Origin: Utricularia gibba
Taxonomy: Eukaryota > Plantae > Magnoliophyta
Assembly: GCA_002189035.1 (NCBI GenBank)
Contig: NEEC01000008.1
Location: 682,001 to 746,000, forward strand
DNA: 64,000 nt
Reading direction: 5' to 3'
The notes beneath the pieces are model-generated. The model saw only the letters and a program-made list of their open reading frames with translations. It did not search any database and was not told where the DNA came from. A program made the position numbers and the translations under genes. The first letter of the stretch is position 1; each line of letters opens with the position of its first letter. This document shows, one piece after another, positions 34,000-64,000 of the stretch.

Positions 34000-35727
34000 T
34001 TACATCATCCCAGAAACATAGGGTACCCCAGCTCTCCGGATCCACTGGTCACCGCCGTAAGCTCTTCCAGGGGTAAAGGATGCAGCAGTCTGTGCTGTGA
34101 TGTGCTTGATCCCCGCCCACTTAACGCGATGAGCAGTGTTGGATCCAGGCCCGCGGTTCATGTACTCTGCATAATACAGTGTATCCAGTGCGAAGTTTCC
34201 AGACCATGGGAACCAACCCTGGGGCGAGATGGAGCCGCCGATGTAGGACTGCATGATGATCGTCCTCGAGTAGATTTTCCATGGGCGTCCCAGATAAGCA
34301 TCGTGCGAGGGTCTGGCATTGATGAAGGCTGGGTCTGACCTGATTTCTCCGTTCTGGATTACTATGACACCATTACTTTTTCTATCCTCGCGACCTTGGG
34401 CTGTCACCATGCAAGACTGCCCTCCCATGGGTTTACGGACGACGAACTGGCAGCTCTGGAAGATGGAGAGAGCATTGCCGAAAACGAAGTCGACGGTACC
34501 GGTGGTGCGACAGTTGCGGTAGAACTGACGGCCGGTGTGTGCGTAGAGAGTATCCTGATACCCGTCCATGTGAACGTTGAAGAAGACACCCAAGTCTCCT
34601 GATGCGCGGAGGGCCACAGCCTGTTCCCCCTCTGGTCCTGCTGTGTTCTCGAAGGCGATGTCCTTGGCCATGAAACCATCCCCATCCACGCCTTTACCAG
34701 CACACAGAAAAGTAGGCTCACGTCATCTCGTAATACTACCAGACAGATGGATATGACAAAACTTACAGACGGTGCAGGATTGGAAGGTCTTGACACCTCC
34801 GGCATAGCACTTCCGACCGGTGACTCTAGTCCTTGTGGGTCCATCTCCTACCAAGACAATGTTGTTCTTTCCTTTGGGAACACTTACGTATTCTTTGTAT
34901 AATCCGGCCTTGACATGAATGACGAATGGAGTAGTGCTCTTAGCAGGGACAGAGTTAATTGCAGCATTGATGCTCCTGAACTTCCCGCTTCCATCAAGCG
35001 CAACCACGACACTTGGGGCGCCCGCCAACATCCTCATCTTGTGCCTGACCCATTCCGGTTCCTCCATTGATAGAAGCTTTCTGTTATTAGTCACGTTTCC
35101 ATTTATAACACCAGTTCCAATCTGCAACTGTCCCAGAATAGAGGAAAGATCAGTCACCATGGCCAAACTATTGCTAGACAACTCTCTCGCTGTTTTCAAA
35201 AGGTTTTTCATCTTCTCTGCTATCTCAGTTGAAGTGGTGTTATCGAATGCATCAGTGCACGTTTCCTCGTTTGTTACCACCCCACTAAGCCAAGTCCGTA
35301 GATCCTCAACATATTCACCAATCTTGCTCTCATCCAACTCTCCCAACTTGTCAAAAGATCTTCTGAGATCATAAATAGCAACATCCAGAACATCTTGGCA
35401 GACAAAAAGTGCGTCCTTGGTGCTGTTATCCTTGGCCGCCTGTTGGAGGAGTGTTGAGTTCTTGAGAACATCCCCAATGGCTTGGATGGTGACTTCAAAC
35501 CCGAGCTTGATGAGCTCCTTAGGGTCTGTGGTGTTGGCACTCGACAGGCTCCTCTCACATGTCTCTCTGTAGTCTGTTGAGGAACAAAGGGCCTGTACTG
35601 CCTTATTGGATGTGGCTGGCGAATCAGCCTCAGAATTCTTTTTCGTGACGGTAATAGCAATGGCAACCACCATAGCCACCACTAGGATGGAGGCCAGACC
35701 TGCAATTACTACCTTATTTCCTGCCAT
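34000..35727 (-). CDS. Pectin methylesterase with N-terminal TM anchor and PMEI pro-domain (550 aa)
   Basis: Exons 34767-35727 and 34000-34691 (1653 nt, in phase). PMEI cysteines, RKLL processing site, and QAVALR, GYQDTLY, GTVDFVFG, YLGRPWK. Confidence 0.95.
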
Positions 35728-35915
35728 TTTCCTCGAAGAGTCAGCTCCGTTTGAGTTCCCAGGTGGCTCTCCTGGATCACAATTTATAGCTGCCAAAACT
35801 ATAATTAGACGATCAGCAAGAATCACAAGCTACCCGCTTCGAATGGAATCCTCAATGGCTATTAACCAACATCCATAAAAAGCTAATGGACAACCATACA
35901 TTCAAACCGTCCGTC

Positions 35916-38993: not shown

Positions 38994-41714
38994 ATGGCCC
39001 GGAGGGTAGGCCTGTATCTGACGCGGCAGTGCACTCTGATGAGATACTCCAATTGTATTACCAGGCGGTTGTTTTGCGCTACCTCTTCCGCAGATCAAAT
39101 TCCAAAGAAAGTCCCTCAATTTTCCAAAAAGGTTGATTTTTTTTTTATTTATTTTGGGTATGTTATTGGGTTTCTGTCCGGTATATCGGCTTGTTGATGA
39201 TAAAACTTTCAATAAAATTTGTGATACTAGTGAAACTACCACCTGTTTCTGCACTCATTTTCAGGGCAGGATATTTACAGGAGTTGCTATTGGCCTGCTA
39301 ATCGGCGGTGGGGCGTATGCAAGTACCGTGGATGAAGCAACATTCTGGTATTGATTATTTCAGATTCCAGCATTGTCCAGGTCATTCAGTATTTGAACTT
39401 GGCTCTTTTTCATATAAATCCTCACCCGTGAGCTATTGTGTGTGCGTTGTTATTATTATTATTACTCTCTGGGAATTGGAACTCTTCCTGAAGGATTTAA
39501 AGTAAGCGCGTCACACCAATGTGATAAAACAATACAAGTTTATGGAAACTTGGTTTGCTGATGATTGATATATTTTGGAGTTACTTCTTTGACATCTCAT
39601 TAAACTGCAGTGGATGGCTGTTTTCTGCAACAAAACTTGTCAATCCCTTCTTTGCATACATGGATCCCGAGGTTGCTCACCGGTTGGCAGTTTCTGCTGC
39701 TGCTCTTGGATGGGTCCCCGTAGAGAAGAGGCCGGACCCACATATCTTGGGAATCAGAGTTTGGGGAGGGGGTTCTCTAATCCAATTGGTCTTGCTGCCG
39801 GCTTTGACAAGAATGCTGAGGCTGTTGAAGGCTTGCTTGGGCTAGGTTTTGGCTTTGTAGAGGTTGGATCAGTCACACCCATTCCTCAGGAGGGTAATCC
39901 AAAACCTCGTATTTTTAGACTTCCAAATGAAGGGTAAGGTGGTCCTTGTTTTGGTTCTTTAGTTTGTAGATCTGTAGTACTCAGGCTATTTTGGATTGTA
40001 AAACTTTACCTTTGGGGATTTATGGCAGTGCTATCATCAATAGATGTGGCTTCAATAGTGAGGGCATTGTTGCTGTTGCAAAACGGCTTGGAGCTCAGCA
40101 TGGTAAAAGAATGTTAGAAACATCCAGTGCTGCATCTCCTGCGGGTGATGAGGTTGCTCATGGTGGGAAGTCTGGCCCAGGCATTCTGGGAGTTAACCTG
40201 GGAAAAAATAAGACCAGTGAAGATGCTGGGGCTGATTATGTGCAAGGAGTTCACACATTGTCACAGTATGCTGATTACCTGGTAAAAATACATCTGCTGT
40301 TTTTTCAAGATATCCTATTCATTCAAATCGTTTATGTGCTTTCTTCTGATTTTTAGCAAATCTTATGTACTGGGTGATTTTTGTAGTAATTGATCATTAA
40401 CTTTTTAGAAATGGGACTATGCTCATGGTGTGCACGACATCCTTTGGTTTCCTTGAGCTCTTTCGTGTAATATGCTGAATTGCATTTAACTTATATTTTT
40501 GTTTTCATATTCCTGTGTGAGTGCATAGTACACAGAGATACCTTTCCTTGGGGGCATATTGAGGTTTTAATTCTTCATGATCTTAAAGCTTTGTTGGTTT
40601 GTTTTTATGTCACTGGATGTATATTTGTAATCTTACAAATGTCCTGCTCATTTTATAGGTTATTAATGTATCATCCCCAAATACTCCTGGACTGAGACAA
40701 CTTCAGGGAAGAAAACAGTTGAAAGACCTTGTGAAGAGGGTAACATCCTGGCGCTTTTGTCATCTACTCTTGATATTCGGGATTGACCATTTTCAAAATT
40801 GGTTTACATTACCATTTTTCAGGTTCAAGCAGCTCGGGATGAAATGCAATGGGGTGAAGAAGGACCACCTCCATTGCTCGTTAAAATTGCTCCAGATTTG
40901 TCCAAACAGGATATTGAAGACGTGGCAGCAGTATGCACAACATTTTTTTTTTTATTGGGCATCCTCTGCAACAGCTTTTGATTGCTTCCCATTTTGTTTT
41001 GCTGCAGGTGGCTCTTGCCTTGCGTGTAGATGGATTGGTATGTTGTGTCTGCTCTTGAAACCCAAAATTTGTATGCTTCGAATTGTTAGTAGCATGCTGT
41101 ACTAATTCATATCCCCCCTCAGATCATTACAAATACAACCATTCAAAGACCAGATACCGTGAGTAACAATCCGGTTTCTGTCGAATCGGGTGGCCTGAGT
41201 GGAAAGCCACTTTTTAGTTTATCAACAAACGTACTCAGGGACATGTACATTCTGACAAAGGTATTCATTTTTTGTCGCAACCTGTGTATCACATCCTGGC
41301 ATGCCGGATGTGTTGCTTCTCTCCGAAAGTCTTGATTCATCTTGCTGGTCTCTCAGGGTAGGATCCCATTGATTGGCTGTGGAGGAGTTAGCAGGTAAAC
41401 GTTGTCTTAAATGCGGTAATCATAGTTTGGGCCGTTTTTTCATTTCCTTGGTGGATTCGTTTTATTCAGTGGAGAGGATGCATATAGAAAAATACGAGCA
41501 GGGGCAACTCTTGTTCAGCTGTATACTGAATTTGCATATGGAGGGCCTGCTCTCATCCCTCAGATAAAGGTACAGAAGTTGGGCTTCAGAGATCCAAGCA
41601 GTATTCAACGAATAGTCCTTGATGCATGTCATTTTTCAGGCTGAACTTGCTGCATGCTTGGAAAGAGATGGGTTCGCGTCTGTGTCCGAGGCAATTGGAG
41701 CAGATTACAGATAG
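38994..41714 (+). CDS. DHODH: Dihydroorotate dehydrogenase (quinone), mitochondrial; one 1-nt deficit as written
   Basis: Eleven exons. Motifs [81 protein letters not shown]. Exon 39611-39933 is 323 nt where 324 is needed, with the frame break in the G-rich run at 39763-39772. Confidence 0.95.
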
Positions 41715-48900: not shown

Positions 48901-50476
48901 TCAAGTTTCTCCTTCGAATGAGAGCTGAATTCTGGGAAGGGTTTTCTGTTCATTTTGCATTCGATACAGGTCGGGCACTTTCCGTCTTCTGGACTCAACT
49001 CAGGTAGGCTTTCGCGAGATTCTGCCTTTTCAAAGTTAAAAGGGATGCATAGTGGTGATGTCCTAGTCTCTCATGCCACAGTTTGGTTTTTTCGATTGTC
49101 ACCAGACATACATCTTCAATGAGAGTAGGCATAGAGAGTGTCAAATGAAAGATTATGTTAATCATTTCGCCTATGAGTATTATATTGTTTGCTTCATCTC
49201 TTATAATACACCTGTTGAGTTCCAGGTGAACCTTATATCCTTTTTCCACCAACTGTCCTGTGCTCAATAAGTTATGAGATATGTTTGGTACCAGATACAC
49301 ATCCAAGATTTTGATCAGTCTGTGTGCAGTTTCTATGCACACGGTTCCCACACCCTCAACAGGTAGCTGCTTTCCATCTGAAATCTCAATAAATTTATTT
49401 GAGAGCTTTGAGATGTGCAAGAATATACTTTTTTCGTTTGTAAGGTGGCGATTGCAGCCACTGTCAACCAACCATACCACCCGTTTTCGGAGATCAGTGA
49501 AGGAGGTAATTAGGGTGTGTTGATACTCGAGATAAAGGTCGACTTTCCTCTTATTAACTTCAGCGTTGAAGGATACATCATTGAAAGAATTAACTAGTTT
49601 TTCCATAGGATCGTCGGACATCCCCACAAGCTGATGATATTTCTTGAGTGGATAGACCTGGTCGACATGGCCTTTGAGCGAACAGTAGGAGCAGCTGACA
49701 TCCGGATTTGAGAAGCATTTGGAGGGTGAGTGTCCTTTCCGCTTGCAATAAGGGCAGAGACCGTTTTGAGGAATCTTCTCAGGTTTGGCTTGAATAAACA
49801 CAGGAGGTTGAGAGGTTTCGGCACATGGCTCCTTCTTGGGAAGTCGAGACTCATGAGCATGAAAGGCAAGTTCTGAGGCGTGCAGTTGATCAGCAGCATA
49901 AGGTTTGATTTCCACCCCTTTTAACCCCTAGAGGAGTTGTTTAGAGCTCATGGAATGGATGCGGCCATCAAACTTATGGAGCCAACACATACTCGAATTG
50001 TTGCAGTACAAGGCTGATTATTTTTGCACATAGGCGACTGTCTTCGATCTTCTCACTCAAGCGTTCTAGACCTGAAACAATTTTTGTTAGTTCTTCTGAA
50101 AAACTAGCAATGGACTAACCTGGATGGATCTCGAGCATCTCGTATTGTTTCCACATGTGAGACTTCTCAATAGCTGCAATTTGTATATCTCGACCATATA
50201 TTGAAGCAAGGGTGTCCCAAGTCTGCTTAGGGGAGGTGCAGTTCATTATGGGATCGTAAGTGTTCCCAGGTATTGCTCCACCTAAGATTGCTTGAGCTTG
50301 ATCTGCTTTTTCGTCCCAGGCTGTCTTTTCATCTTATGTTTTTCCTGAGTATTCTGTTGATACAACTGCCCATAGCTTGCATGCACGTAAATAAAGGGTC
50401 ATTTTGTTTGCTCAGCGTTCATATTCACTGCCGGTGAATGTTGGTGCAGGTTGATTGAAGTTAGAGGCCATGGCAT
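45940..50476 (-). pseudogene. Copia gag-pol, fragmented
   Basis: CPYCKRKGHSPSKC, WLVDSGCNRH, LWHERLGH, SDVWGP, FWGEAVNT..YLLN, KWIFKTK..KARLV, LYVDDILITGS, YLMATRPDI, IDNKSAISIA. Confidence 0.93.
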
Positions 50477-50559: not shown

Positions 50560-50564
50560 TGTTA

Positions 50565-52455
50565 GGGCGCGTTTGCTTGTTGGGTTTTGCCTAAACCCAG
50601 ATTTAGTTTATTTGGGTTTAGGGAACCCGGTTTTGTGGGTTTAGTCTCTGTGAATCATTTTTTGTTGATGGGTTTACATTATTTGGGTTTAAATAAACCC
50701 ACGTTTGCTTGGTGGGTATAAAATTGGGTTTATACATAATTTTCATGGGAATTTACTAATATAGCCTTTCACACTCGTGCACCGACTTTCACACCCACTT
50801 TACCCATTCAGACATATTCCTCTTTCTTACCATTACCCCCTTCGTCCAACGACTTTCACAGTCCATTGTCGCGGTGCTGCCGGTCGACGAGATCTCTCGT
50901 TTTCACAAGTAATTGAGAGTGAAGAGCCATGGGTTACGTCCAGTTTGTATACTCCCTTCGTTGCACAGGGTTTCTTGTTTAAAATCCGTTGAATTTTGAG
51001 TGAATTTTACGGTTTACTTGTGGTAAGTGTTCGGTGTAGATGCTTTGTTCTTGCTGTTTTATTTCCTCCAGCACAGATTGCAAATATGCATAGCCCAAAC
51101 GTGATGGAAGAGTCTCACAAAAAAACGAAACGCGCCTGGAAGCCAGATGAGGAGAAAGACTTGTTGCACGCTTTGAAGCAGATCGTGAAAAAAGGTTGGA
51201 AAATTGAGAATGGTTTCAGGTGTGGGTATCACCGAGCGTTAGAGACAGAGTTTTTGAAACTCCTACCTAGAACCGACATCCGCGCACACCCCCATATATC
51301 TAGCAAGGTGCACACCTGGAAAAAAGACTACTACCTCCTTGTAGATTTTTTATCACGATCAGACACCGGTTTCAGTGAGCTGACCTACACCGTAGACGCA
51401 GACAATGAGGTTTGGAAGGAGATTGATCAGGTATGTATGCTCTGTTGTTGTTGTGTTATATCCGGTGCTGACCGTGTTATTATGTCAGCATGCACCCAGA
51501 CTGCGTGCCCTAAGACACAAGGCGTGGCCGTATTACATGGAGTGGCAGGAAATCTTTGGAAAGGATCGGGTTACAGGAGAAAAAATGAAGAGCTATGTAG
51601 CCGCGATCAAGAAGAGGAAATTCATGGAAGATGTGGGGGAGAATCTGGAAGTATCTTCGGATTGCCCTCTGGACCCGGATAGCACTGGACACGATATGAA
51701 CTTCTCGTATGCTGACACACCTTGTGACCCAATTGGTTGTGCTGCGGAGGGTTTCAACATCACGCCTAGTAGGGACTCTGAATCACACAACAGCACCAAC
51801 TCGTCGCGGCGCACTGGACGAAGCGGCAGGGGACCGAGGGGAATTGATGATGATGTGCAGTTTATCACAGAAATCAAGGAGCTTAACATGCGCACATGCG
51901 AAGAGCTACGTCACTTGGGATTAACAGTGGTGCAGCAAGCGCGGGACTTGATGGATAATCAGCGTCAGGCAGGGGAGATCATTAGAGGTATGCCGGTGCA
52001 ATTAACTGCCATCGAACGTTTTACCATAGCAGAGACGATTAGTTCCAACCCTGCGAGGTTGCGCTATTTCCTTGCCTCTAGCGACTGTGAGAGAGAGCTA
52101 ATTGTGCGTGGTTTAGTATCCGAATGTTGATCTTAAATCTGTTGTGTGGTGCTCCGCCTTATGTTGGAGTCATGGACTAGATGTATTTCGTCTTCTAATT
52201 ATCTTTTAAACTGATATGAGCACTGCAAAGGGTAGACAGTGTTCTAACTTCGTATGTGGAAGCACCGCATAATAGCAATCGCGGTGCTTCGTTGTTGAGC
52301 ACTCATCCGCAAACGTGGTGCTGCAACTATGGGTAAATTCATAGCAGTGCTATCGAGTAGTGATGGACTAGCACCGCGTTGGTTTTGCGTATTACGAAGC
52401 ACCACGTCTAGACACAAGGTTTCAAATCCATAGATGGCACCGGATGTTACAACAT
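50565..52455 (+). repeat. Left inverted arm
   Basis: Reverse-complement homology to 55301-57139 from the TIR to ...GGCACCGGATGTT(AC/G)AACAT, with scattered substitutions and indels. Confidence 0.9.
51086..52130 (+). CDS. Harbinger Myb/SANT-like DNA-binding protein, intact (328 aa, 2 exons)
   Basis: Exons 51086-51430 and 51489-52130, 58-nt GT-AG intron, phase 0, no stops. Motifs RAWKPDEEKDLL..GWKIENGFRCGY, PHISSKVHTWKKDY, WPYYMEWQEIFGKDRVTG. Confidence 0.88.
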
Positions 52456-52551
52456 GCGGTGCCACCGCGAATAGTGATCGATTAAAAACTAACAAGGTCA
52501 GCATACGATAGTTCACGCAAGATCCATGCAATTGCAAAGGTGCGCCGTCGA

Positions 52552-53621
52552 TTAGACAAGAGCCTTGTAATGCTTCCACAATGGGTGTTCCTCATCTATT
52601 GGACGTTGACCTACCCGACGTCGATTGACGTACGTGGGTACATCCATGTTGTCAATGAGGGCTTTCAGGAACGACCTAATATCTCCCCTCGAACCAGCGA
52701 ACAATCATTCGCCGCGGTGTACTTGAATGTGGTTGGGAATATGGCATTTTCGGGCTGTTCAGTGAAAGTAAACAATCATCGGATGCAAGACGGTGGAGAA
52801 TGAGCGCTACCGAAAACTCACCGGATTGTGTAGTGACTTGTATGGCGCATCATCGATGAGAAGCATATTAACACGGTGATATTTGCCCTTGAACTCGGTG
52901 TTGGCGCCCATACATGATTCAACAGCTTAAGCTTAACCGTGTTGTTCCTGTTGTCGTGCATCGGATAGCCAGTGTCCACACACCTGGATCCATCCCATTG
53001 GAAGACGAGCTTGCTAGCTACTGCAGTCCCTAGTAACCACTGAATCACATCGTGCAATTGTTCACTGTCACACGTCGTCAGAAAAAAAAAATGTCAGTAG
53101 GAATGCGGACCCCCTTGTCTGCTAGGTGGTCAGTCTTACCGCCCTCTTGAAGACCAGATAGCGAGGTCAAAGTGTTCCATGCAAAATTGTATCAACTCAC
53201 ATGCACCTGGTCGAAGATACACTACAACCACAAGAAATAGTACTGACACATGAACCAAATATTAAATGCATATCAATGACATTGCATTACCGTTTCGCCC
53301 GTAAATGACGGCATCCGGCTTTGGCGCTCCCCATATGACTTCGCGAGGATACACAATGTCCGCAAGTACGCCATTCATGTCAAATATAAGCAACTTCCGT
53401 GGTGGGGCCGTGTTATCACTAGACAGTCCACCATATGGCCACCTTGCTTCATACCATGCAAGCCGACCACAAAGATCAAGATTCTCTGCGTACAGTCTCT
53501 CCACTTCGATATATTTTGCAGTGACAACACCACACCCGTCATCGTGAGTCCAGATCGGTGTTGGCGTGTCCGTGTTGCCCCTGACTTCTGGCTGCACATC
53601 TTCTTGCTCTTCATGGGTCAT
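52552..53621 (-). CDS. FCP1-homology / NIF (HAD-family) phosphatase-like gene, 4 exons, two 1-nt deficits as written
   Basis: Exons 53291-53621, 53140-53221, 52822-53064, 52552-52754 with GT-AG introns of 69, 75 and 67 nt. Motifs RKLLIFDMNGVLADIV, VYLRPGACELIQFCMEHFDLAIWSSR, KLVFQWD, NMLLIDDAPYKSLHNP, GGDIRSFL, GQRPI..HPLW. Confidence 0.8.
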
Positions 53622-54760
53622 CTCCTCAGGATCATCATTTGTACTCGTACGTTATCGACGGTGTCGAGGGGTTCCGCACCACAAATGTTGTGTCCTAGGG
53701 GCATTGACGAAGGGGGGCAAGACGTCCTCCAAGGACTTTGTTCTGCAAGAGAACAAATTCACGAACCTCCTTGCCGCACGTTTTGGCAACACCTCTATAC
53801 CTACAATGAAAACAGCAACAAACATGAGTACGGTTGCACAAGATGTGTGCAACACCGAAATTATTCTGTATGGTTACCTGATGGATGTCCTACATTCTCT
53901 AACACTGTCAACGTTGTTGGCCATTCTGCAGCGGTGGGTGGGCATACCCATACAAAACTGGTCCATCAATCATCATATGCACTTCTCACGTCTGTAACCA
54001 GAATCACACCATGTTTTCCATGAAGCGAGTAGTGTGGATCATTGGAGCCAACACCACGATCTTCAGTTGAGGTGCTTCCACATAGGCTTGTACGACACCA
54101 ACGTTGTGGGCAGCACCATGTGTTTCATCGTATCCGGTGCTCATAAAATTGAAGATTAGATGAGTGTGAAGCTGGTGCATAGTAGTGAGGGTATTTGGTA
54201 CTACAGCAAAGCGTCATTTGACCGAACACCGCGATCCGTAAACTCCGGTGCTTCTGTACGCTTGGGCTATGCTGCGTTCAGTGCTGCACCGAATGTTTCC
54301 TCGTATCCAGTGCTGTCAAATCTTAGAAGTAGATGTGTACGCAGCTCGTACATGTTAGCATGGGTGATTGGTAGTACAATAATACTCCATTTGACCAAAC
54401 ACCGCGATCCGTAATATGCGATGTTTCCAAATACCTGAGGTATGCTACACATTCCACAGCATCGCGAAAACCTAATCCGATGTTCTGAGTTCCAAAAACA
54501 AAATGCCATAAGATATTGCAGTTATCCAGCATTAAATGCGAAGGGCGGTTGACAACCGCCCAGCGCTATTAATACCCCCCTGCGCACAATAAAGACGCCT
54601 GACATTGTGCACTTTCCAAAATAACTTCATTAATTCTGCCATCCAACTCCACCCTTTCAGCAAACATGCAACAACACCACGAAAACAGTCTCCTCGGCAA
54701 CCTCTCTAGAACAGCGTCGCGACGGTAGACACCTTTGCCCTTTGCATTTCAAATTCTTCG

Positions 54761-55249
54761 TTGCCATTGTCGAGTAACACGTCTATTGTTTTCCAGATGT
54801 TGACATGTGAGAAACTACGTGTCCGCTTCTCAATTCCCGACGGTTACACGATGTGGGATAAACAGTCGGGCGAAACGTCGGACGGCGAACCACCATCCAG
54901 AGTTGGCGGTTCGGGATTCGCCGTCAGCACCGAGCACTTTCGGTGTGGATTGCGACTCCCCCCACCCCCTTTCTTAGTGCAAATACTTGCTGCACTTCAG
55001 ATCCCACTCTCCCACCTAACACCGCGTTATGTGGCACACGTTCTCGCATTTTTGCAGATCTGTGAAGAGGAGGACATAACCCCGGAAATGCATGTCTTCT
55101 TTGTGGTTTCTATTTGTGTCCAACGCAAGGGGGGTCCGCACTACTCGCTTCATGGAAAACCTGGTGTGGTACTGGTTATAGACGTGAGAAGCGCATATGA
55201 TGATTGGTGGACCAGTTTTGTATGGGTATGCCCACCCACCGCTGCATAA
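54761..55249 (+). CDS. Transposase_28 (PF04195, putative Gypsy-type transposon)-like ORF
   Basis: 162-aa open frame with LRVRFSIP, EHFRCGLRLP.PPFL..IL...IPLSHLTP...VLAF..IC, WWTSFVWV, resembling the antisense accessory domain of Tat/Athila-type Gypsy elements. Confidence 0.65.
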   Translation: MPLSSNTSIVFQMLTCEKLRVRFSIPDGYTMWDKQSGETSDGEPPSRVGGSGFAVSTEHFRCGLRLPPPPFLVQILAALQIPLSHLTPRYVAHVLAFLQICEEEDITPEMHVFFVVSICVQRKGGPHYSLHGKPGVVLVIDVRSAYDDWWTSFVWVCPPTAA

Positions 55250-55300
55250 TGGCCAACAACGTTGACAGTGTCAGAAAATGTGGGACACCCATGTCAGAGG

Positions 55301-57139
55301 ATGTTCAACATCCGGTGCCGTCTCTGGATATGAAACCTTGTGTCTAGACATGGTGCTTCGTAATATGCAGCACCAACACGGTGCTAGTCCATCACTTCTC
55401 GATAGCACCGCTGTGAATGTGGCGGTAGTTGCAGTACAATGTTTGCAAAAAAGTGCTCAAGAACGAAGCACCGCGCTTGTTCATACGCGGTGCTTCCACA
55501 TACGAAGTCAGAACACTGTCTACCCTTTGCAGTGCTCATACCAGTTTAAAGGAGGAAAAGAAGATGAAATACATCTAGTCCATAAGTCTAACATAAGGCG
55601 GAGCACCACACAACAGATTTAAGATCTACGTTCTGATGCTAAACCACGCACAATAAGCTCTCTTTCACAGTCACTGGAGGCAAGGAAGTAGCGCAACCTC
55701 GCAGGGTTGGAACTAATTGTCTCTGCTACGGTAAAACGTTCGATGGCAGTTAATTGCACCGACATATCTCTAATGATTTCACAGTCACCAACTCCCGCGC
55801 TTGCTGCACTACTGTTAATCCCAAGTGACATAGCTCTTCGCATGTGCGCACGTTAAGCTCCTTCATTTCTTTGATGAACTGCACATCATCGTCGATTCCC
55901 CTCGGTCCCCTGCCTCTTCGTCTAGTCCGCCGCGACGAGTCGGTGCTATTGTGTGGCTCGGAGTCCCTACTAGGTGTGACGTTCACACCCTCCACAGCGC
56001 AACCAATTGGGTCACAAGGTGTGTCAGCATACGAGAAGTTCATATCGTGTCCAGTGCTATCCGGGTCCAGAGGGCAATCCGAAGATACTTCCAGATTCTC
56101 CCCAACATCTTCCATGAATTTTCTCTTCCTGGTCCCGTGAACATAGCTCATTGTTTTTTCTCCATGTAATACGGCCACGCCTTGTGTCTTAGGGCGCGCA
56201 GTCTGGGTGCATGCTGACATAATAACACGGTCAGCACCGGATATAACACAGCGACAACAAGGCATATGTACCTGATCAATCTCCTTCCAAACCTCATCAT
56301 CTGCGTCTACGGTGTAGGTCAGCTCACTGAAACCGGTGCCCGACCTAGATAAAAAATCTACAAGGAGGTAGTAGTCTTTTTTCTAGGTATGCACCTTGCT
56401 AGATATATGCGGGTGTGCGCGAATGTCGGTTCTAGGGCGGAGTTTCAAGAACTCTGTCTCTAACGCTCAGTGATACCCACCCCTAAAACCATTCTCAATT
56501 TTCCAACCTTCTTTCACTATCTGCTTCAAAGCATGCAACAAGTCTTTCTCCTCGTCTGGCTTCTAGGCGCGTTTCGTTTTCTTGTGAGACTCTTCCACCA
56601 CGATTGGGCTGTGCATACCTGCAATCTGTGATAGAGGAAAGAAAAAAGCAAGAACAAAGCACCTACACCGAGCACTTACCACAAGTAAACCGTAAAATTC
56701 ACTCAAAATTCAACGGATTTCAAACGACAAACTCTGCGCAACGAAGAGAGTATACAAACTAGACTTAACCCATAGCTCTTCACTCTCAGTTACTTGTGAA
56801 ATCGAGAGATCTCGTCAACCGACAGCACCAAGACAACCGAGTGTGAAAGTCGGTGGACAAATTGGGAAAACTAGGTAATAAAGAGGAATATGTCTGATTG
56901 GTTAAGTCGGTGTGGAAGGCGGTGGACGAGTGTAAAAGGCTATATTGGTAAATTCTCATGAAAATTATGTATAAACCGAATTTTATACCCACCAACCAAA
57001 CGTGGGTTCATTTAAACCCAAATAATGTAAACCCATCAACCAAACATGATTTCTAAACCCTAAACCCACGAAACCGGGTTCCCTAAACCCAAATAAACTA
57101 AACCTGGGTTTAGGCCAAACTCAGCAACCAAACGCGCCC
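55301..57139 (-). repeat. Right inverted arm
   Basis: Reverse complement of 50565-52455. Confidence 0.9.
55619..56616 (-). pseudogene. Second Myb/SANT gene copy, inactivated
   Basis: Homologous to 51086-52130 but with premature stops at 56563-56565 (TGG>TAG), 56467-56469 (CGA>TGA) and 56383-56385 (TGG>TAG), plus a deletion near 56160 removing WQEIFGKDRVTG. Confidence 0.88.
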
Positions 57140-57565
57140 TTAGAGTTTGCAATAAGGTAGGATATTTGGCTGTTTTGAGACAGGTTTTGAGACTTTGAAA
57201 ATATTGAACAAAGGCAGAGAAGAATATTGGTTGCTTATGCAGTTACTTAGGGGGGGTACATGAATATTTGTAAGCGGAGAAACTAGTCGTTGTTGAAAAC
57301 TGTTGCACCAGTCTGTCCGTTACGTAGCCAGGCTACTAGAACAGTGGTCAGACTGAGTGGGCCGCTAGGAGTTGACAGCCCATCATGGTATTGGTTGGCC
57401 CAGAAGAGCAGAGTCCACTGTCTTTCCTACTTTCTGTCCAGATTGCTTCTTGGCGGGTGTTCTTCATAGCTGGGTCTTGTCTCTCGCGCAAGTTCTTAGA
57501 CACTTTCTCAGTCGGGTATTCTCCGGTCTTTGAGCCATCCTTCACCTCCATATCGATCACTGACA
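57140..57565 (-). repeat. 5' LTR of the Copia (bulk; its terminal TGTTA is displaced to 50560-50564)
   Basis: Aligns to 45448-45903 with substitutions and one internal deletion of about 22 bp. Confidence 0.93.
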
Positions 57566-58049
57566 TGGTTTAATATCTACTCATTGCATGTCTTTCACTA
57601 CTACTAATGTTCCAAAACACCCTTTGTCATCTTCATCTAAGGGTTGCACACCACACAATATAACAATTTCAGTCAAAAATATCAAAAATTATGCAAATCA
57701 AAAGATATTTATAAAGGAAATACTAGTTAGTCTTCCAATATTTGATAAGTTCAATATGTATCTAACTATTATAAACATTACATCTTCTAGCAAAGTGAAC
57801 CATTTGAAATTAATTCATCAATCTCTATAAAAGTCTCATAAATTTATCGCCATGATAATTCCACCATTCAATGATATTGAAAAATAATGTCTCAAGACAA
57901 CTTTTGAGCACTTTTCAATGTCAAACAATGTATCAATACTAAGTATAAACTTGTCATTTTAGCATAACTTAATAAAAATCAACAATATTATTGATGAGAC
58001 ACAATATTAAATAAAATAGTGGAACATGCAACAAATGAAACGCCAACTG

Positions 58050-58200
58050 AATTAAAGATTGAATTGTAATTTCAATCCACATTTAAAATGCTCTGTATTT
58101 ATATTAAAAGCATGGGAGCCAATATTGTGTGGTTCATCAGAAATTTTCTCACCATCTTTATTGTTTGATATTACACATTTTTTGGGGCCAAATTTGTGAA
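58050..58200 (-). pseudogene. Decayed relic of the same Transposase_28-like domain
   Basis: DGEKISDEPHNIGSHAFNINTEHFKCGLKL aligns with GETSDGEPPSRVGGSGFAVSTEHFRCGLRL of ORF 54761-55249. Confidence 0.5.

Positions 58201-60253: not shown

Positions 60254-64000
<3,747 letters not shown>

Follow-up and report, generated by a model that had tools for sequence, protein, structure and literature searches.

Introduction

Plant DNA transposons are known to carry a few accessory genes that manipulate their host, VANC and the ULP1 proteases being examples. VANC of VANDAL21, the MULEs that bear ULP1 proteases and the Pack-MULEs are known cases of accessory or captured genes in plant transposons. An inverted duplication of a transposon can also act on its own family, as Mu killer, which derives from MuDR, silences the family. 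VANC is mentioned in PMC13547354. The transposons of the PIF/Harbinger superfamily, in turn, are two-gene elements that encode a Myb-like ORF1 and a DDE transposase (e.g. PMC2213677). On the side of the host, the plant CTD phosphatases comprise CPL1-5 and 16 SSP genes, and those of the FCP1/SCP1 type in Arabidopsis are CPL3-5 and the 16 SSP genes, according to a review (PMC8774115), in which a term search found no form of the DxNG type.

Here we describe an element from Utricularia gibba (GCA_002189035.1, contig NEEC01000008.1, forward-strand positions 682,001-746,000); this stretch of 64,000 nt is called the window, and all positions are those within it. The element is like the PIF/Harbinger transposons in its TIRs, its 3-bp TTA duplication and its Myb/SANT-like ORF (PF12776), but differs from them in being without transposase, in forming a foldback with two Myb arms and in holding a third gene, which joins a Transposase_28-like domain to a NIF domain. 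The copy of the NIF domain in the window resembles the FCP1/SCP1 phosphatases in scoring above the gathering score of PF03031, whereas it differs from them in motif I, which reads DMNGV with the second Asp replaced by Asn, and in having no close relatives detected by sequence; in addition, the family is transposon-borne, numbers many copies and has its NIF domain joined to a Transposase_28-like one. As in the case of the VANC, ULP1 and Pack-MULE genes, DNA transposons here carry and multiply a gene that comes from the host and encodes no transposase. The likeness to VANC is one of analogy; no homology of the NIF gene to VANC or ULP1 is expected and, in contrast to typical Pack-MULE fragments, the majority of the NIF family has its frame open at each of the four breaks of the window copy. 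What is shared with Mu killer is that transposon sequence is duplicated in inverted orientation at a single locus.

Materials and Methods

Public DNA reads were used as short assembled contigs from runs X1, X2 and X5, which represent three samples, and were aligned to the region 52000-54500 at 90-100% likeness. X9, one small RNA run of assembled contigs, was aligned at 90% likeness. Matches to PF03031 (Pfam NIF) were judged against the gathering score of 21.8 bits, and the queries for Pfam and for the ESM Atlas were the in-frame parts of the NIF copy (115 aa and 51 aa) or single exons. Substitutions relative to the family majority were scored for 20 of the 40 listed majority differences. The five-exon model of the family gene is based on frame continuity in the window and on the read majority.

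Results and Discussion

The NIF copy is borne by a transposon, as a preliminary description of this DNA had proposed: Harbinger/Tourist-type TIRs (GGGCGCGTTTG) at both ends, TTA target-site duplications at 50562-50564 and 57140-57142 and a Myb/SANT-like ORF (50996-51679; PF12776, E 1.5e-6) were all found (Table 1). The features of a PIF/Harbinger element are present as far as the TIRs with their 3-bp TTA duplication and the Myb/SANT-like ORF1 are concerned, and no transposase domain was found among the element ORFs that were scanned for a DDE transposase gene. The element is non-autonomous. It is built from two inverted arms of about 1.85 kb, which are 89.95% identical with 4 indels and enclose a spacer of 2.9 kb, and the divergence of about 10% between the arms indicates that the element is old. 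The unique middle of the foldback also contains a 153-nt direct repeat (54102-54254 and 54275-54427) whose units are 71% identical.

Table 1. Features of the element and of the NIF gene copy, followed by the sites at which the DNA contigs carry another letter than the window. Site rows give variant depth/total depth in each run; sites are given on the + strand and codon meanings on the minus strand.
Feature	Position	Strand	Description
Whole element, foldback-like non-autonomous PIF/Harbinger-type	50565-57139		6,575 nt; TIR starts GGGCGCGTTTG; TTA duplications
Left arm of inverted repeat	50565-52448		Myb_DNA-bind_3 remnants, + strand ORFs 50996-51682 and 51405-52130
Right arm of inverted repeat	55307-57139		
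1.43-kb segment, left arm only	52449-53880	-	1,432 nt: intron 0, linker, all NIF exons, about 100 nt of 3' flank
Transposase_28-like exon, right-arm copy	54761-55249	+	PF04195, E 8.9e-10; arm sequence directly after
Transposase_28-like first exon, tail	53878-54038	-	Residues 126-162 of right-arm ORF; TGA 53968-53966
Intron 0	53801-53877	-	77 nt, GT..AG; joins Transposase_28-like exon to linker
Linker, upstream continuation of the exon holding ATG 53621	53622-53800	-	In frame; broken only by TAA 53654-53652
Exon 1 of the preliminary description	53291-53621	-	ATG at 53621; 75-aa N-terminus, then HAD motif I FDMNGV
Exon 2	53140-53221	-	VYLRPGACELIQFCMEHFDLAIWSSRG; core of NIF match, HAD motif II
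Exon 3	52822-53064	-	Contains first frameshift and motif IV LLIDDAP
Exon 4	52552-52754	-	Contains second frameshift; stop TAA 52554-52552
Site 52906 +C	52906		One more G in run (minus strand); X1 64.5/92.1; X2 51.8/51.8; X5 511/775
Site 52684 +C	52684		One more G in run (minus strand); X1 52.1/101; X2 42.7/90.8; X5 316/435
Site 52685 +T	52685		Other added base, also frame-restoring; X1 12.7/101, X2 17.9/90.8 (one contig each); X5 0/517.8
Site 53654 A>G	53654		CAA for TAA; X1 60.8/68; X2 47.6/51.7; X5 349.5/349.5
Site 53966 T>C	53966		TGG for TGA; X1 174.1/192.4; X2 180.9/183.9; X5 1662.4/1662.4
Site 53621 T>C	53621		GTG for ATG; X1 221.7/228.8; X2 257.2/263.2; X5 1467.1/1508.7

The two arms carry different forms of the cargo. 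At the place of the 1.43-kb segment the right arm has 14 nt (55293-55306), and the left arm contains the same two right-arm pieces (54038-53881, and from 52448 downwards) split by 53880-52449. The long form is that of the family and the short form of the right arm a deletion, because DNA contigs with 12 differences span the junction between the NIF segment and the arm at 52448/52449, this 3' junction being common to other family copies, and because the coding frame crosses the 5' junction into the Transposase_28-like exon.

Splicing and translation bear out the gene structure that had been given for the segment: four minus-strand exons from 53621 to 52552, separated by introns of 69, 75 and 67 nt that are all GT..AG, a terminal TAA, no internal stop in the frame segments that lead to it, two 1-base frameshifts at G runs (about 52906 and about 52685) and a spliced product of 286 aa, with X at both breaks. 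The first break comes after the Trp codon 52910-52908, in a + strand run of 3 C (52907-52909; 3 G on the minus strand), and the second falls in a run of 4 C (52685-52688; 4 G on the minus strand). The assignment to the FCP1/NIF proteins, proposed from the letters of the DNA, was upheld by the PF03031 profile. For the 115-aa part between motif I and the first break the score is 27.6 bits (E 2.6e-6, profile positions 1-75), above the cut-off; exon 2 by itself reaches 18.3 bits (E 0.0019) and the 51-aa part between the breaks 13.5 bits (profile positions 110-144), and the pieces run colinear with the profile over the first break. The ESM Atlas features of exon 2 lead to NIF clusters (0.90; 199 of the 256 features in common), and those of exon 1 gave nothing useful. 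When exon 1 (110 aa) was compared with 1.84 billion representatives, the sole match was a spurious bacterial repeat protein (P0001), and its 75 N-terminal amino acids are without detectable relatives. A word index of 5.8 billion proteins contained no match to the exon 1 ORF, the 115-aa NIF part or the Transposase_28-like ORF, nor did the PDB sequence search return any with exon 2 or with the 115-aa part. The NIF domain here is a divergent PF03031 member.

Motif I is LLIFDMNGVL, with FDMNGV at residues 80-85, in agreement with the DMNGV read before: the nucleophile Asp is present, the second Asp has become Asn, and the DxDx(T/V) form with both aspartates is not found in the copy. On inspection by eye, AIWSS, VKLKLL and LLIDDAP seem to stand at the positions expected for motifs II-IV. 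The copy shows what we take to be the HAD layout of SCP1, with the Asp nucleophile of motif I, AIWSS supplying the Ser of motif II, a Lys ahead of NHVW and, in LLIDDAP, the Asp-Asp of motif IV.

The coding frame continues upstream of the ATG at 53621. Between 54100 and 53622, once intron 0 is spliced out, 133 codons lie in frame with this ATG and contain only two stops (TAA 53654-53652 and TGA 53968-53966). Since only about 2 in 1000 random stretches of this length would lack stops, these codons are coding sequence, and from the continuity of the frame what had been called exon 1 would form the 3' part of the second exon in a gene of five exons. We read the family gene, from its sequence, as a Transposase_28-like exon 1 followed by the linker and by the NIF/FCP1-type HAD domain. 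In the left arm only residues 126-162 of the Transposase_28-like part are kept, about three quarters of the first exon being absent there.

How common is this gene in the genome? On the 2.5 kb of the region aligned (52000-54500), 422, 418 and 880 short contigs were obtained from the three DNA runs at 90-100% likeness. The depth of the perfect-match contigs is about 6-14 in X1 and X2, and the summed depth is roughly 10-30 times higher, which indicates a many-copy family. At each of the four lesions that break the window copy, namely the two frameshifts and the two nonsense codons, the family majority has an open frame (Table 1), and the right arm also reads TGG where the left-arm copy has the TGA 53968-53966. 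At 53654, 53966 and 53621 the window's own letter has a depth of 3-18 in X1 and X2, near that of the perfect-match contigs, and since this is about the depth of a single copy, the three substitutions (TAA, TGA and ATG) are real mutations. The ATG at 53621 is thus a copy-specific accident, a G-to-A change from the GTG of the family. As a separate observation, two of the DNA runs each contain one contig, of depth about 5, that lacks intron 1 and 3 exon bases (53225-53293) and has 6 other letters in between; on the minus strand the frame is kept, GRN/VYL becoming GRSQIVYL, which means that a NIF copy without intron 1 exists somewhere in the genome.

The changes accumulated by the window copy have the character of decay. 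On the coding strand, C>T and G>A account for 11 of the 20 scored differences from the family majority, and the change that created the TGA at 53966 is of the same kind; we read this proportion as the neutral decay of a methylated repeat. Inside the 286 codons lie 17 of the 20 scored changes, 7 of them synonymous and 10 non-synonymous (in 9 codons), with no stop. With 17 changes, the absence of stops is expected about half the time and the synonymous excess is not significant; the 7 synonymous changes and the lack of stops leave room for some constraint on the 286-codon frame, and part of the synonymous excess may date from the active period of the lineage. Expression, which the preliminary description had considered, found no support, as X9, one small run of contigs, gave no contig at 90% likeness despite the abundance of the family in DNA, and none of the RNA runs is listed as holding the NIF stretch.

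We consider it highly probable that the NIF copy is an old, dead, 5'-truncated copy of a many-copy, five-exon Transposase_28-NIF transposon gene; as a gene in its own right, it is ordinary transposon debris. Of one old copy of the transposon gene, the locus would preserve the 3' four fifths. A foldback-like, transposase-less Harbinger derivative, with the NIF copy in its left arm, would have inserted as one unit, and its decay would have involved the formation of the foldback, the loss of the cargo from one arm and nonsense mutations of the C>T type. Most of exon 1 is missing from the left arm, two nonsense codons lie upstream of the ATG, and the ATG itself is due to the G-to-A change. At this locus the copy most likely does nothing as a gene and is a mutated passenger in a dead element.

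The inverted arms could nevertheless give the locus another role, as the source of a hairpin: read-through of the arms would produce dsRNA and siRNAs directed against the Harbinger family, in the way that Mu killer acts on MuDR. Arms that are 89.95% complementary over 1.85 kb around a 2.9-kb spacer, in a genome with many family copies, would suit such a role, but no transcript was found in X9 or among the listed RNA runs, a mismatch of 10% would make the hairpin imperfect and the middle, where the NIF part is situated, stays unpaired. We regard this role as unlikely.

The two frameshifts bear on a further alternative, that the copy is an intact NIF-only accessory gene which can be expressed and whose 286-aa product starts at ATG 53621, and that both frameshifts are errors of the assembly. 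By our estimate, it is somewhat more probable than not that both are assembly artefacts. The preliminary description had placed the missing bases in G runs, and the public DNA contigs agree, the family majority having one more G at each site. It had also pointed to the same type of lesion in two genes of the window, both host genes, and single-base frameshifts were indeed found in both of them. The DHODH gene (39600-41700, + strand) is one G short near 39770 (GTTTGGGG-AGGGGG; VWG/RGFSNPIG) and the CUL1 gene (60254-64000, + strand) is one base short near 62990 (TTTATGG-ATACGTG; HDKFM/YVNDCF), the exons of both being otherwise good. These lesions have the look of an error that the assembly makes systematically at G/C runs, and their presence in the same window makes an assembly error plausible in the NIF copy as well.

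The contigs themselves speak less uniformly. At 52906, all the readable contigs of X1 and X2 that are flagged for the insertion or clipped carry 4 C, and X2 has no 3-C contig; two clipped 4-C contigs in X1 may account for the depth at this site that goes without an insertion flag. At 52684, the depth without the added base is 30-36 in X1 and X2. The neighbouring letters specific to the locus, at 52872 and 52923, are mostly absent from the DNA contigs as well, so the absence of the window's form of the G run proves nothing. One-base indels between the arms are rare in the element (1 in 1.85 kb), and the count of zero G/C-run indels between the two arms in 3.7 kb is uninformative. Three intact host ORFs, 5.3 kb in total, are free of any such single-base error, and by the rough rate that they provide two assembly errors in 0.86 kb would be unusual. 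As a caution for the assembly, single-base gaps at G/C runs should not be trusted outright, either as lesions or as errors.

The extra G of the family majority at both sites, the lesions of the same kind in DHODH and CUL1, the rarity of real 1-base indels in the element and a stretch of 286 codons without a stop would all fit an intact gene. However, its ATG is a copy-specific G>A change, its frame is what truncation has left of a longer gene with two nonsense codons just upstream, and the left arm lacks most of the first exon, in which the start of the gene would be expected. To this are added the lack of RNA contigs, the proportion of C>T/G>A changes, which exceeds one half, and arms that have diverged by about 10%. 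The claim of a probably intact gene is therefore not supported: the frame extends upstream of 53621 into a Transposase_28-like exon with two copy-specific nonsense codons, and where an uninterrupted frame from a conserved start was looked for, the family reads GTG at the supposed start and the copy, as assembled, has two frameshifts and upstream stops. We hold the intact gene to be very unlikely and prefer to see in the copy a dead, truncated remnant, in which, if both 1-base deletions are assembly errors, the 286-codon NIF-only frame would be open by chance.

A one-off capture of a host NIF fragment into this element, of the Pack type or as filler DNA, is suggested by the presence of the 1.43-kb segment in one arm only and by its retained introns, yet it is highly improbable, as the segment is covered in the three DNA runs by contigs of 90-99% likeness that number in the hundreds, the 12-difference contigs share the 3' junction 52448/52449 and the frame crosses the 5' junction into the Transposase_28-like exon; it was rejected for this locus because the junction is common to other copies. 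A domesticated host gene was also rejected, since the sequence lies inside TIRs and a target duplication, is multi-copy and carries changes of the decay type.

The point of interest is the many-copy family gene and not the window copy, which serves as a worked example of element decay. What might the family protein do? The Asn at D+2 is probably the family state, given that no majority variant is listed at 53375. The family protein would keep the Asp nucleophile, the Ser of motif II and the Asp-Asp of motif IV, and would have Asn at the position of the general acid/base (DMNGV). In HAD enzymes, loss of the general acid/base slows or blocks turnover and leaves substrate binding in place. With Asn at this position, a protein that binds or traps a phospho-substrate is therefore likelier than an efficient CTD phosphatase; more precisely, binding or trapping of phospho-Ser/Thr, or a very slow turnover, appears the more likely activity. 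It is possible, though we propose it only tentatively, that the family gene encodes an undescribed accessory protein, made of a Transposase_28-like part and a NIF pseudo-phosphatase, which is open in active Harbinger masters and binds, or slowly dephosphorylates, a CTD-type substrate of host transcription or silencing.

In our search of the literature on the Harbinger superfamily no description of a Transposase_28-like plus NIF gene was found, and a search that combined FCP1 homology, NIF, PF03031 or CTD phosphatase with transposons returned no NIF/FCP1-like gene in plant transposons. If the proposal is true, a many-copy fusion of a retrotransposon-type part with a CTD-phosphatase-like part would be another case of an accessory gene, and would suggest a new interface with the host in the phosphorylated tails of RNA polymerases or their partners.

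Some sequences in the neighbourhood of the element deserve mention. Just outside it lies a distant Transposase_28-like frame (57800-58186, minus strand), with 22.6% identity to the 54761-55246 ORF (E 2.8e-6), which is presumably part of another transposon. Just upstream of the element there is a Ty1/copia-type polyprotein fragment (48998-49915, minus strand; Pol_BBD and gag_pre-integrase). Elsewhere in the window, a pectin methylesterase gene that includes a PMEI pro-region and looks intact (34003-35826, minus strand; PF04043 and PF01095) has apparently one short intron, estimated at about 70 nt, which is similar to the introns of the NIF gene.
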